From Podarcis filfolensis (lineage: Eukaryota): a stretch of 64,000 nt of DNA. The notes beneath the pieces are model-generated. The model saw nothing but the letters and a program-made list of their open reading frames with translations. It ran no database searches and was not told where the DNA came from. A program made the translations under genes and the position numbers. The stretch lies in NCBI GenBank assembly GCA_964270895.1, contig OZ185448.1; one strand, written 5' to 3'. Positions 21,695 to 48,071 of this stretch are shown here, one piece after another. Within the stretch, counting starts at the first letter, position 1. Each line of letters opens with the position of its first letter.

Positions 21695-22840
21695 TTAATA
21701 ATTTGTGTTAAAGGTTTTCTTAGTTTACAAAAGTACATTGTCTCTTTATCAGGTTGTGTTTTCTACAGATCAGTTACATTTGTTGTGAGACATTAGTGTT
21801 GTATGCAGTATAAGGTTGAGACGAGAAGGGGGGGAATTGTGCCAGCATCCACTGGATATGTTCTCTTTCTATTCTCTTATTATGTTTCCTTGGTAATGAG
21901 AGGTATTGGGGGGGCAGGGTGTGGTTGGTTGTCTGTGGTTGACTGCAGTGGGGTTTGTTTGCAATTGTGAGGGGAGGAGGACTTGTTGGGTCAAGTAAGC
22001 CAAATTGATTCATATGCTGTTGATGGGTTCTTGTTGTCTTGTTGGGCTGTGTATGTGATAAAGGGGATCCATACTAGGGTGAAGGTATCCTCTTCTATTT
22101 GTCCCTGTATCAGTTTCAGTTTGTTGGTTAGCTTTTCTAGTAAGGCTGTTTCCCATACGACTTGGTACCAGTTGTCCTTGTTCACTCCTGACAGGTCTCT
22201 CCAGTCTATGAGGCTAAGAGTAGGTGGGTCATAAGCTCTTTGTAATGTGAGTGGTCAATAGGATCTTGGAAAATCTTCAGTAGGGCCAGTTCTGGGGTGA
22301 GTTCCAATACTTGTTTAGTTACTTTGCATATCTCTTGTAGGACATTTGTCCAGAAGGGTTGGATTTGGGAGCATTTCCACCACATGTGGAGGTATGTGCC
22401 TGTAGAGGTGCAGTCTCTCCAACATTTTCGTGAGGTTCCTGGGTGTATCAACGCCAGTTTCCGTGGTGTTAAGTACCATCTGTATGTGAGTTTCAGTGTG
22501 AGTTCCCTTCTTTTGGCTGAGATAGATTTAAAGGGAGGTTTAGACCACGTTCTAGTCCATTGGGTGGGGTTAATTTAATGGCCTATGTCATGCTCCCATT
22601 GTTTTTTGATTGTGTTAAGGGAGCTTGTGAGATTTTGGACCAGTATTTTGTATATTGTGGATACCATCCCTTTGCCTTGTGTCTTTGTTGTTAGGAGAAG
22701 ATTTTCAAAGGTGGTCAAAGGCCTAGTTGCTGCTGATTTTACTACTGGATTTTTTAAAGAAGGCATGCAATTGGTGGTGTGTTAGCCAGGGCATTTAGGT
22801 GTCCCCTAGTTTGTCTTGTATTTCTTGTGAGCCAAATTCT
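21695..22840 (-). mobile_element. Older L1 LINE 3' fragment (frameshifted ORF2)
   Basis: Minus-strand pieces KCWRDCTSTGTYLHMWWKC (Cys-rich CCHC motif), WYQVVWE and TIKKQWEHD; the 3' UTR is shared with 55030-55440. Confidence 0.8.
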
Positions 22841-40842: not shown

Positions 40843-40947
40843 GAACACAAAAACTGCGGGGAGATGACAGAAATCGAAGCTAAAGTGAAATACGTGAAGT
40901 TGGCTCGGTCTCTGAGGACGTACGGAGTGTCTTTTTTCCTTGTTAAG
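40843..40947 (+). CDS. TLN2: TLN2 coding exon 8 (F2/F3)
   Basis: ctttgcag|GAA...GTTAAG|gtagga; EHKNCGEMTEIEAKVKYVKLARSLRTYGVSFFLVK; 105 nt. Confidence 0.97.
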
Positions 40948-41029
40948 GTAGGAGGGGCTTGCTTTCAATTCAGTTTTCATTGCTTATAATGAACGGCTTA
41001 CCCATACAAGAAGCTGGTGCATGATTTTT

Positions 41030-42550
41030 TTTTTTTGCAAAGCGGAAAATGTATTTATTGGCAAGAAGTCTTTGAGGCCTGAATTAAGTCATATGGTTAG
41101 AATAACTTACATTCACAAAACAAAGAAACACAATACTGATCCCTCAGTGACTGCCATAGCAATCTGCAGCTGAATATTACAGATTAAAATAAAACCATGT
41201 TTTGAAATCTGCCTGCCCATAGATAGCTAGATGTCAGTGAAAAGCACTGGAGGCTTTTCTGTTAGGTTGAATGGGGCACCACATCAGCAATTTCATTCGG
41301 ACCTCAGCCACCCCCACCTTCCTAGGGTGTGGCACTGCTCTCTGTTTCCTCCTTCTTCTTTTTTATAAATATTTTTATTAGTTTTCCAACACAATTATAC
41401 ATTTTTCTCTATGCTTTAACAAATTAATCTTTTTTGACTTCCTTCCGCTTCTCTGGTAATCATCCATATTTACTCTTCAATACGCATTCCCTTCATTGTA
41501 TTGCCATTTGTCTTCCCTCCCCTTTCTATTTTTTTTGACAATACATCTCAAACTTTTACAGTGCTTCTTGAAACCCCACTAGCGTTGTTTGCACATCGCA
41601 TACATTTTTCAGATAATCTACAAACTTTCCCCAATCTTCAATGAACTTTTGGTTTCGAACATATCTTATTTTCCCAGTCAATCTGTCCAGTTCCGCATAG
41701 TCCGTTAATTTCAATCTCCATTCTTGTATCGTCGGTACTTCCTCTTGTTTCCATTTCTGGGCCAATAAAATTCTTGCTGCTGTAACTGCATACTGGAAAG
41801 GTTTGCAGTCTTTCCTTCTTATTTCATTTCCTGTAATCCCTAAAAGAAAAGCTTCTGGTTTCTTAACAAAAGTATATTTTAAAATCTTTTTCAATTCATT
41901 ATATATTGCTTCCCAAAAGCTCCTCACTTTCTTACATTCCCACCACATATGGTAAAACATTCCCTCTTTTTCTTTACATTTCCAACACTTATTACATGTT
42001 TTATACATTTTTGCAAGTTTTACCGGTGTGATGTACCATCTATAAAACATTTTCATAACATTTTCCTTCAGCACCGTGCATGCAGTAAATTTTAAATTTT
42101 CTTTCCACAATTTTTCCCAGTCTTCAAATTGAATATTATAACCAAAATCTTTGGCCCATTGTATCATTACCGATTTGACCTCTTCATCTTTCGTGTACCA
42201 TTCCAACAATATCTTATACATTTTTGACAAAATTTTATATTCATTATTTATTATGTCTATTTGGAACTTAGAATCTTTTTCTTCATAACCACTTTCCTTT
42301 ATATCTTTTTTAAACATTTCGTTTACCTGGAAATAATGCAACCAATCATATACATGATCTTTAACTTGTTCATATGGTTTTAATTTCCATTTTCCTCCTT
42401 CTTTAGTTACCATTTCCCCATACGTAGCCCATTTACCTCTCATATTAATTTTCTTTACACACATGACCTCCAGCGGGGATAACCAATGTGGGACTCTTGG
42501 TTCCAGAAGACTCTTATACCTGTCCCATACTTCTATTAGCGAATTCCTGA
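41030..42550 (-). mobile_element. Young 5'-truncated L1 (41359-42550) plus a 3'-transduced segment (41037-41358) and poly(A), flanked by a 22-bp TSD
   Basis: ORF2 C-terminus is open without stops from 42548 to the TAA at 41556 (includes CWKCKEKEGMFYHMWWEC). AAGAAGCTGGTGCATGATTTTT occurs at 41008-41029 and 42551-42572. Two AATAAA signals on the minus strand (41374-41379, 41054-41059). Confidence 0.88.
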
Positions 42551-43946
42551 AAGAAGCTGGTGCATGATTTTTCTCAAGTCAGAAGACTTAGGGTTCCCTG
42601 TAAGATGTAAGAATTAATGAAGATTAATGAATTGGTAGGATTGTCATTGAAGCAGGGGAGAATGCGTTTGTGTGTGTGTTTAAAAAATGAATTGTTTTTT
42701 GCAAAGAAGTTAAAATAAATCATGGCGGTGGTCCTTAAACATTGTGGTATTTTATTTTTTAATTAAATATTTTTGGGATATGGCCAGATTCAGCTCAAAG
42801 CTCATGGGCTGCTTCTGAGCCACTCATATGTTCTCAATCAAATCTACCTTTAAGGTGTGCTTTGAGGATAAAAGCAGGGTGGGAATGAGGATGCTGCATG
42901 CTGTCTTGAGCTCATTAGAGGAAGAATGTGATTATTTTAAAAGTACTCAACATATAAATTAACTAACAGCCAGGGGTTCCTTTGGAGCTTCAACAGCAGC
43001 TGCTGACATTGCTTTTTAATTTTTATTTATTTAAACAAGAACATATACTTCAATAACATACAAGAATAAAGAAATGAAGAAAAGCAATACAGCTGAATGA
43101 AAATTAAACAAACACACACATGCGTATGAATTTGGACCGTTTCATTCACATTCCCTGAAAAAACCTACCCTATTCTTGCTGGGGGTGAGTGGTAACATTT
43201 TTTTAAAAGATGCATTTTATTTACAAATATTAGGATATATTCTCCCTTAAAGCCGAAAAGTCACTAGGAATTTCAAATAGCAGCCTATTTCACAGGAGGC
43301 ATTTGAACATTGTTCGCCATGTTCTTTCAAACCAGCCTGCCCAGGGAAGATTTATACACAAAGAAGAGAACGGCTCTTGCAGGATTCTCAGTATTGTGAC
43401 TTAATTAAGTGATGCTTCTTTCAAATACTGAGATTTCTTAGAGGTTCTAAAGAGAGGTGGCTTCAGGCCAGCAGCATCCCAGGCAGTAGGAACACAACCA
43501 TTTGGATAATTACTTGTCTACAGTGACATGCTGGGGTGTGTTAAATTAAAAATGCCTATTAAATTCCTTAGACTTGTTTTAGTACTGACGAAAGCAATTT
43601 GTCATTCAGTTGTTTCAGTAGCCATGCTGCGCGTTGTATAGCTGTGATAAATGTGTGAAGGAAGGCCATGGCAGTATCTGGGGCTTGAGTTACTGAAGCG
43701 CAATCCAGCCCCTTGGGAGCGCAGGGATCTGCTGCTTCTGCACCCTGATACGTGGCCAGCCCACCTTTGTTTAAAACACTCTAGCCAAGGAGAGTCCGCT
43801 TCCTTCCGAGACTGACTGTTCCACCGTCCAACACCACAGAAGGAAGGCTTCCAGCTGCCCCGCCCCCTTAGAAAGCAAGAAGAGCCTGCTGGATTGGTCC
43901 AAAGGCCCAAAGAGTCCAGCCTCCGGGTCTCACAGGGGCCAGTCAA

Positions 43947-46590
43947 ATCATCATCATCATCATAATTTATTATTTATACCCTGCCCATCTGGATGAGTTT
44001 CCCCAGCCACTCTGGGCTGCTTCCAATCGAGTGTTAAAAACAATACAGCATTAAATAATAAAAACTTCCCTAAACAGGACTGCCTTCAGATGTCTTTTAA
44101 AGACAAGATAGCTGCTTATTTCCTTCACATCTGAAGGGAGGGTGTTCCACAGGCTGGGCGCCACTACCGAAAAGACCCTCTGTCTGGTTCCCTGTAACCT
44201 CACTTCTCGCAATGAGGGAACCACCAGAAGGCCCATTGCTTTTCATTTCAGTCCTGGAGGTTTTGCTAAACATGATTAGAAGAGACCATCTGATTAAAGG
44301 TATTCAGGTCGGAGCTAAACAGTACAAACTTAAAGCGTTTGCAGATGACTTAGTATTGACATTACAGGAGCCAGAATCTAGTACGAAAAGAGTATTAGAA
44401 TTGATTCAGGAATTTGGTCAAGTGGCAGGATTTAAGTTGAACAAGTTAAAGACTAAGGTTCTTGAAAAAAATTTAACACTGATTGAGAAAGAGAGGTTTC
44501 AGAAGGAGACGGGTTTAACACTGGTAAAGAAAGTAAAATACCTGGGGGTTAACATGACCGCTAAAAACTTAAATTTATTTAAAGATAACTACGAGAAATG
44601 TTGGTCAGAAGTGAAAAAGGATCTTGAAATATGGTCAAATTTGAAGCTTTCCTTGTTTGGTCGAATTGCCGTTATAAAGATGAATGTATTGCCAAGAATG
44701 TTATTTTTATTTCAATCATTGCAAATTTTGGACAAAATGGACTGTTTCAAGAAGTGGCAGAGAGATATTTCTAGATTTGTCTGGCAGGGCAAGAAGCCCA
44801 GAATAAAATTTAAAATATTAACTGATGCAAAGGATAGAGGTGGATTTGCCCTGCCAGACCTTAAACTTTATTATGAATCAGCAGCATTTTGCTGGTTGAA
44901 AGAATGGCTGCTTCTTGAGAACACAGACATTTTGGATTTAGAAGGTTTCAATAACGTTTTTGGGTGGCATGCATATCTGTGGTATGACAAGGTTAAAGCA
45001 CACAAAGCATTTCATATTGTCAGAAGGGCATTGTTTAATGTCTGGACAAGATATAAAGATTTACTTGAAAATAAAACCCCAAGGTGGCTATCACCGATGG
45101 AAGCGAAGGCTCAGAAAAAGCTCAATATGGAGGCCAAATGGCCAAAATATTGGGAGATTTTGGAACAGGAGGGTGACAAACTGAAATTGCAGAGTTTTGA
45201 GAAACTAAAAGATAAAGTGCGAGATTGGCTTCATCAATATCAAATAAGGGAGGTCTACAACTTGGACAAAAAAACTGGTTTCCAGGTGGAAAAATCAAAA
45301 TTGGAAACAGAACTGTTAGATCCCAAAACTAAGATATTATCAAGAATGTATAACTTGCTGTTGAGATGGAACACTCATGATGAAACGGTTAAATCTGCTA
45401 TGATAAAATGGGCACAAGATGTTGGACATAACATAATGTTTGCTGACTGGGAACAGTTGTGGACCACAGGTATGAAATTCACGGCATGTAATGCCTTAAG
45501 AGAGAATATTATGAAAATGATATACAGGTGGTACATGACACCAGTCAAGCTTGCAAAAATATATCATTTGCCCGATAATAAGTGTTGGAAATGTAAAGAA
45601 ACTGAAGGTACATTCTTTCACCTTTGGTGGACGTGCCCAAGGATTAAGGTTTTCTGGGAGATGATCTATAATGAAATGAAAAAGGTATTTAAATATACCT
45701 TCCTGAAGAAACCAGAGGCCTTTCTCCTGGGCATGGTCGGCCAATTGGTGCCAAAGAAGGACAGAACTTTCTTTATGTATGCAACAACAGCAGCAAGAAT
45801 TCTCATCGCAAAGTATTGGAAGACACAAGATCTACCCACCTTGGAAGAATGGCAGATGAAAGTGATAGACTATATGGAACTGGCGGAAATGACTGGCAGA
45901 ATCCGAGACCAGGGAGAAGAGTTGGTGGAAGAAGATTGGAAGAAGTTTAAAGACTATTTGAAAAAAACATTGTAAAATTTATGAATGCTAAAATGATGCT
46001 GGATTGAAATGAAGTGGCTTTAGCAATAAGGTTAAAAAGAATATGTAAAAATGGACTGATAATTAGATGAAAATATAAAGTTATAATATGTTAAGACATA
46101 GAATTAAGATAAAAACAAAGAGGGAAAGGATTTGCTGAATTAACTATGTGAATTGGAATACAAAAAAGGGAGGTGTGAGGAGGTCAGGAAACAAGTAATT
46201 GAAATATAAGATATGAAAAGATTGACCTGTTTTTAATTGTTTTTTATTTTTTCATGTATTTTGTATTTTTCTTTGTCTTTTTATTTTTTATTTTTTCTTT
46301 TCTTATTCTGTAATTTTCTTTTGTCTGTAAAATTTCAATAAATATCTTTAAAAAAAAAACAACAGAAGGCCCTCGGAGCTGGACCTCGGTGTCCGGGCTG
46401 AACAATAGGGGTGGAGACGCTCCTTCAGGTATACAGGACCGAGGCCGTTTAGGGCTTTCAAGGTCAGCACCAACACTTTGAATTGTGCTCCGAAATGTCC
46501 TGGGAGCCATTGCAGATCTCTCAGGACCGGTGTAATGTGGTCCTGGCGGCCACTCCCAGTCACCAGTCTAGCTGCCGCATTCTGGATTAA
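43947..46590 (-). mobile_element. L2 3' fragment (43947-44234 and 46373-46590) interrupted by an L1
   Basis: L2 text gagggaaccaccagaaggccc|tcggagctggacctc is contiguous in the uninterrupted copy at 51110-51150. Confidence 0.88.
44235..46362 (+). mobile_element. Young 5'-truncated L1, sense to TLN2 (ORF2 RT C-terminal half plus Cys-rich domain, 3' UTR, poly(A))
   Basis: Open frame to the stop at 45975 with YKLKAFADDL (RT catalytic motif) and CWKCKETEGTFFHLWWTC; AATAAA at 46337-46342; A10 at 46350-46359; TSD CAGAAGGCCC at 44225-44234 and 46363-46372. Confidence 0.92.
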
Positions 46591-47915: not shown

Positions 47916-48071
47916 GAGAAAATGAAGGGGAAGAACAAGCTGGTCCCTCGTCTGCTGGGCATCACGAAGGAGTCGGTGATGCGTGTGGATGAAAAGACCA
48001 AGGAGGTCCTCCAGGAGTGGCCGCTGACCACCGTCAAGCGCTGGGCGGCCTCGCCAAAAAGCTTCACTCTG
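47916..48071 (+). CDS. TLN2: TLN2 coding exon 9 (F3, integrin-binding PTB-like domain)
   Basis: ttcacag|GAG...CTG|gtaatc; EKMKGKNKLVPRLLGITKESVMRVDEKTKEVLQEWPLTTVKRWAASPKSFTL; 156 nt. Confidence 0.97.

Follow-up and report, generated by a model that had tools for sequence, protein, structure and literature searches.

The window analysed here, a stretch of 64,000 nt from the squamate Podarcis filfolensis (assembly GCA_964270895.1, contig OZ185448.1), holds a 5′-truncated L1 followed at its 3′ side by 322 nt of dissimilar sequence, both located in an intron of the talin-2 gene (TLN2). The locus raises the question of whether the two parts arrived together and, if so, how an L1 came to bring a passenger (hereafter the “tag”) with it. 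The first-pass annotation of the window had proposed a recent L1-mediated 3′ transduction, a process reportedly described for mammalian L1s by Moran in 1999 and by Pickeral and Goodier in 2000.

Anatomy of the Composite Insertion

The composite is delimited by an exact 22/22 direct repeat, AAGAAGCTGGTGCATGATTTTT, whose two copies were recovered by a repeat search (41008–41029 and 42551–42572; Table 1). By our own estimate, an exact pair of 22-mers would turn up by chance within 2 kb with a probability of about 1e-7. No copy of this target-site duplication (TSD) follows the A6 run with which the L1 itself ends. Since the sole TSD pair lies outside the L1 and the tag together, both parts fall within one duplication, which measures 17–22 bp and encloses one L1 and one tag. 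The corresponding nick on the plus strand would lie at 42572/42573 (5′-TTTTT/CT-3′), immediately after a T5 run, and agrees with the L1 endonuclease consensus TTTT/AA in its T half only. The poly(A) is joined to the nicked T-run and the L1 is 5′-truncated, both hallmarks of target-primed reverse transcription (TPRT), and the window contains no N bases. The L1 and its 322-nt passenger were very probably inserted together in one TPRT event. All of the elements on which the first-pass annotation had built its proposal (the 22-bp TSD, the L1 with its 3′ end, the 322 bp with its own AATAAA and the poly(A)) are present where it had placed them. Its view of a single insertion primed at a T-run agrees with the exact TSD and with the nick after T5, the T half of the consensus being the only half involved.

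Table 1. Features of the composite insertion, of its surroundings in TLN2 and of the other L1 copies in the window.
Feature	Position	Strand	Remarks
Third ORF2-like fragment, distant	22257–22781	−	28% amino acid identity over 177 residues to L1 ORF2 C-terminus
Talin-2 FERM exon EHKNCGEMTEIEAKVKYVKLARSLRTYGVSFFLVK	40843–40947	+	PF00373 FERM_M domain present in relatives of the ORF
TSD, 3′ copy	41008–41029	−	Exact match to 42551–42572
Terminal poly(A)	41030–41036	−	A7 beyond TSD; A12 (41036–41025) counting the five A's of the TSD
Non-L1 passenger (tag), 322 nt	41037–41358	−	Own AATAAA at 41059–41054
Internal A-run (A6)	41364–41359	−	9 nt after the L1's AATAAA
L1 3′ UTR	41555–41365	−	AATAAA at 41379–41374
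L1 3′ terminus (ORF2 stop, 3′ UTR, AATAAA, A6)	41359–41558	−	Matches canonical L1 end
5′-truncated L1 body	41559–42550	−	C-terminal 330 ORF2 codons including Cys/His motif, open
TSD, 5′ copy in L1 sense	42551–42572	−	Minus-strand reading AAAAATCATGCACCAGCTTCTT
Second L1, older, 5′-truncated at ~44235	44219–46372	+	Sense to TLN2

The 3′ Terminus of the L1

The assignment of the 322 nt to a passenger depends on where the L1 ends. Read on the minus strand, its AATAAA (41379–41374) is followed by AATATTTAT and then by A6, an arrangement of AATAAA, 9 nt and A6. This end was compared with those of six loci encoding the nearest ORF2 relatives, which are 55–71% identical at the amino acid level. Counted from the ORF2 stop, the distance to the terminal AATAAA is 176 nt in the window copy, 187 nt in L002, 172 nt in L006 and 208 nt in L005, a Podarcis locus, and in all four the signal sits in the common motif GAAAAnTAATAAAAA. 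Furthermore, the 3′ UTR of L002 aligns with that of the window L1 as far as AATAAAAAATATTTGCAAA, and the two are divergent beyond it. The second L1 of the window, whose end the first-pass annotation had likened to that of the first, indeed terminates in caATAAAtatcttt plus A10 (46337–46359), with its own imperfect duplication directly after. Vertebrate L1s as a group end in AATAAA plus poly(A) (Boissinot and Sookdeo, PMC5381506). Taken together, the terminus shared with the relatives, the second L1 and the AATAAA/poly(A) rule place the end of the L1 at 41359–41365, leaving 322 nt beyond. These alignments indicate that the L1 part reaches the canonical 3′ terminus of its family.

Past the L1 terminus, L002 (1700–1725) and the window copy (41330–41365, minus strand) both read AAACAGAG..CAG before continuing into unrelated sequence. 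As this resemblance is short and nothing related follows it, it is probably due to chance and was not taken as homology. The A-tail of L002 is nearly absent (A3).

The second L1 is 54% identical to the first in its ORF2 C-terminus (45022–45963). It has a long T-rich 3′ UTR (~46220–46330), ends in AATAAA plus A10 and is flanked by the imperfect duplication AACCACCAGAAGGCCC/AAACAACAGAAGGCCC, in which 14 of 16 positions agree.

Age and Family of the L1

The L1 body starts at 42550, and its ORF2 frame is open for 330 codons (42548–41559, minus strand) up to the native stop at 41558–41556. In none of 2000 composition-matched shuffles of the L1 coding stretch was the open frame kept. Although the 330-residue translation has no match in Pfam, the proteins related to it are squamate L1 ORF2 C-termini: the closest relative in the protein collections is the Logan contig protein P0001 (71% identity), followed by Podarcis lilfordi proteins named “reverse transcriptase zinc-binding domain” (54–57%) and by Anolis carolinensis proteins (41–43%).

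The ratio of observed to expected CpG (CpG O/E) is 0.63–0.64 in the L1 part, as opposed to 0.34 in the other L1 of the window and 0.28–0.31 in the host background. New stops are expected to accumulate in 330 codons at a rate of about 0.71 per 1% divergence. The complete lack of stops in these codons therefore corresponds to a divergence below ~4%. By this measure the insertion is evidently young; of the age claimed for it at the outset, youth stands, and “recent” would be bounded only loosely, at a divergence below ~4%.

The 322-nt Passenger

The tag begins directly after A6 with a 14-nt purine run, GAAGAAGGAGGAAA. Its own AATAAA (41059–41054) was found, as the first-pass annotation had it, 17 nt ahead of the A12 run at 41036–41025, so that the tag appears to end as a pol II transcript would, with a signal, 17 nt and a tail. 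Its GC content of 42% lies between those of the L1 part (33%) and of the window (45%). The tag has a CpG O/E of 0.14, with 2 CpG observed against ~9 expected at the ratio of the L1 (p ~0.006 by our own Poisson estimate). This low value would fit DNA that has resided in the host for long and has been methylated, unlike the L1 part. No second copy of the tag was found within the window, where it matches only itself, and no tag-like sequence was seen in the second L1 or in the six related L1 loci (55–71% amino acid identity). Composition and comparison mark the tag as non-L1 and, to all appearance, host-like DNA. The purine run after A6 resembles what the start of the source element's 3′ duplication might look like, had its nick fallen in a pyrimidine run.

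Several other identities were considered for the tag. An ordinary part of the L1 3′ UTR was rejected, as the tag is missing from the six related loci, whose proteins are 55–71% identical to that of the window copy. A SINE or known RNA was likewise rejected, since Rfam gave no match at E ≤ 1 and no tRNA was detected. An exact look-up of seven tag ORFs found none of them in a collection of 15 billion proteins, and two exact tag patterns had no match in metagenome contigs. The species itself is evidently not represented in the protein collections, because the best L1 relative there is only 71% identical. An exhaustive phmmer search with a 45-aa tag ORF returned a single match, P0139 (E 1.9e-9), which proved to be a repeat artefact: this 788-aa protein is translated from tandemly repeated units of ~174 nt, and one chance match of 27 bits is counted ten times in it. 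The case calls for caution wherever short non-coding sequences are used as protein-search queries.

Position Within the Talin-2 Gene

The exon flanking the insertion (40843–40947, plus strand) encodes EHKNCGEMTEIEAK...GVSFFLVK and is followed by the donor GT at 40948, after which 60 intronic nt precede the duplication. The distance from the donor given at the outset (60 nt, with the duplication starting at 41008) thus holds. The next exon (47916–48071) is identical at 51 of 52 positions to solved talin-2 chains, which identifies the gene as talin-2 and bears out the host gene named in the first-pass annotation. Both L1s lie in the same intron of ~7 kb, the first of them antisense to TLN2. For the exon ORF, 118 relatives were found, of which three were fetched; in the seven loci fetched in all, which belong to distant taxa, the exon alone aligns and the intron does not, and no orthologous empty site was recovered from them.

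On the plus strand, the terminal poly(A) appears as a T12 run (41025–41036) that starts 77 nt after the donor, in agreement with the U12 tract reported near it. T12 followed by GCAAAG (41025–41042) forms a pyrimidine tract with an AG ~95 nt after the donor, which might act as a cryptic 3′ splice site. In TLN2 sense, the insertion also contains AATAAA or ATTAAA motifs at 41183, 41188 and 41764. Any effect of the insertion on the splicing of TLN2 is a matter of speculation.

A Probable 3′ Transduction and Its Alternatives

The composite is probably an L1 3′ transduction by read-through. A source L1 of a squamate family would have been transcribed past its own AATAAA, a signal with a purine-rich stretch but no GU-rich element behind it. 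Cleavage and poly(A) addition would then have formed the 3′ end of the transcript at the first AATAAA that could serve beyond this point, ~320 nt inside the adjoining host DNA. After the L1 endonuclease had nicked the T5 run of the talin-2 intron, the poly(A) tail would have annealed at the nick, and reverse transcriptase would have copied the tag, then the short genomic A-run of the source and finally 1.19 kb of L1, where it stopped. Cleavage of the second strand ~17–22 bp away would have given rise to the duplication.

This reading is favoured because one exact 22-bp TSD encloses both parts, because the L1 part stops exactly where its relatives stop, and because the tag is unlike the six related L1 loci and the rest of the window, differs from the L1 in GC and CpG in a host-like manner and bears a poly(A) signal of its own, an AATAAA at 17 nt from the tail. 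The purine run at the junction, which may represent the 3′ duplication of the source element, adds to this, as does the order of the parts: catalogued chimeras keep the L1 at their 3′ side, and non-L1 DNA at the 3′ side is the classical read-through signature (Pickeral 2000, cited in PMC5381506). Some points weaken the case. The family 3′ end was defined from distant members (55–71% amino acid identity), so that a subfamily-specific extension is conceivable, and the nick 5′-TTTTT/CT conforms to only the T half of TTTT/AA. Of the transduction proposed in the first-pass annotation, the single event, the canonical L1 terminus and the non-L1 tag are upheld; that the tag directly adjoined the source L1 at a genomic donor site is what we infer.

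The locus resembles mammalian L1 3′ transductions in the succession of a canonical L1 3′ end, non-L1 DNA and a downstream AATAAA with poly(A), as well as in the single TSD around all parts, the nick at a T-run and the 5′-truncated L1. It differs from them in its squamate host and non-mammalian L1 lineage and in its very short internal A-run (A6), the terminal tail being A7–12; compared with the mammalian cases, it is known here from the insertion site alone. Structure by itself does not single out this origin, as a template switch, the retrocopying of a host transcript or a nested retrocopy with an all-A duplication would produce it equally.

In a template switch, reverse transcriptase would start on the poly(A) of a cellular mRNA or lncRNA, copy its last 322 nt, jump to the poly(A) of an L1 RNA and copy 1.19 kb of it, thereby leaving the same anatomy of two sense-oriented RNA copies with a short A-run between them inside one duplication. 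Such a course would suit the end of the tag, where AATAAA precedes the tail by 17 nt as in an authentic pol II transcript. Known chimeras formed by template switching or ligation likewise join two unrelated RNA-derived segments in the same orientation within one duplication and show TPRT hallmarks. However, they retain the L1 at the 3′ side and the foreign RNA at the 5′ side (bioRxiv 10.1101/2025.02.02.635956), and the L1 is also the 3′ segment in U6/L1 and other snRNA-, Alu- and mRNA-L1 chimeras (PMC4476161). In the present composite the parts stand the other way round from what cis preference would lead one to expect: the L1 forms the 5′ part, and the foreign segment bears the poly(A) signal and the terminal tail. 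Furthermore, a template switch would leave the 14-nt all-purine run at the junction unexplained, since any C in the terminal stretch of the cDNA would be unable to base-pair with poly(A), and this origin is unlikely. If it were true, the locus would represent a chimera of reversed polarity whose reverse transcription was initiated in trans, which would suggest that this L1 lineage is less strict in its cis preference; the tag would then represent the end of a gene's 3′ UTR rather than a marker of a source L1. An anatomy identical to that of a transduction would also result if a host pol II transcript, with a young L1 in sense orientation in its last exon or 3′ UTR, had been mobilised in trans and its copy 5′-truncated inside that L1. 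The cis preference of L1 makes L1-promoted transcripts far likelier templates, and a young L1 with an intact ORF fits an active source, which renders a host transcript a decidedly unlikely template. The tag would in that event still mark the source locus, and the source L1 need not be full-length or active.

Alternatively, the tag could be the longer 3′ UTR of a particular L1 subfamily, perhaps acquired by a transduction long ago, since fixed in the lineage and now carried by all of its members. Such an extension might escape a comparison resting on relatives at 55–71% amino acid identity, and L1 3′ UTRs turn over fast (PMC5381506). Yet the composite contains an internal canonical terminus (AATAAA and A-run) at a position conserved in the relatives, the CpG O/E of the tag (0.14) is far from that of the L1 part (0.64), and neither the six related loci nor the remainder of the window contain anything tag-like; a subfamily-wide 3′ UTR is therefore quite improbable. 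Still less credible is a sequence of two events, in which the L1 was inserted and a 5′-truncated retrocopy in the same orientation later entered its poly(A) tail, leaving a duplication hidden in the A-runs. The tag indeed ends as a polyadenylated pol II transcript, as nested processed pseudogenes and retrocopies do, and it is flanked by A-runs only (A6 on the left, A12 on the right), which permit a duplication of A's alone that would be invisible. The A-tail of an L1 is, moreover, a T-run on the opposite strand, and T-runs of this kind are favoured targets of the L1 endonuclease. Nested retrocopies normally show two concentric duplications, whereas here there is one, with at most an A-run around the tag. 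Two insertions would have had to strike the same ~10 bp within the short life of the insertion, during which 44 bp of duplication and 330 codons have stayed unmutated, and just 7 right-hand A's would have to suffice for the tail of the retrocopy, for its duplication and for what was left of the L1 tail. What probability remains after these five readings falls to an artefact or to something else.

Significance

Read-through of this kind is to be expected wherever an L1 has AATAAA at its end. The composite, probably a 3′ transduction, is a fresh example of a known mechanism and as such not surprising to a specialist. In the literature searched, 3′ transduction is discussed for mammals only, and no explicit description in a squamate was found. 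Squamate genomes harbour many coexisting L1 lineages. To our knowledge, the tracing of squamate L1s to their sources has hardly been done, and the tag would be useful as a marker of the source L1. The antisense position of the insertion, 60 nt from a talin-2 splice donor, is also a fair reason to consider it for genotyping as a polymorphism. If the tag maps beside a full-length L1, it would single out a source element in a squamate genome that is active now or was so recently, and it would mean that host DNA is also mobilised by L1 poly(A) read-through in animals other than mammals.
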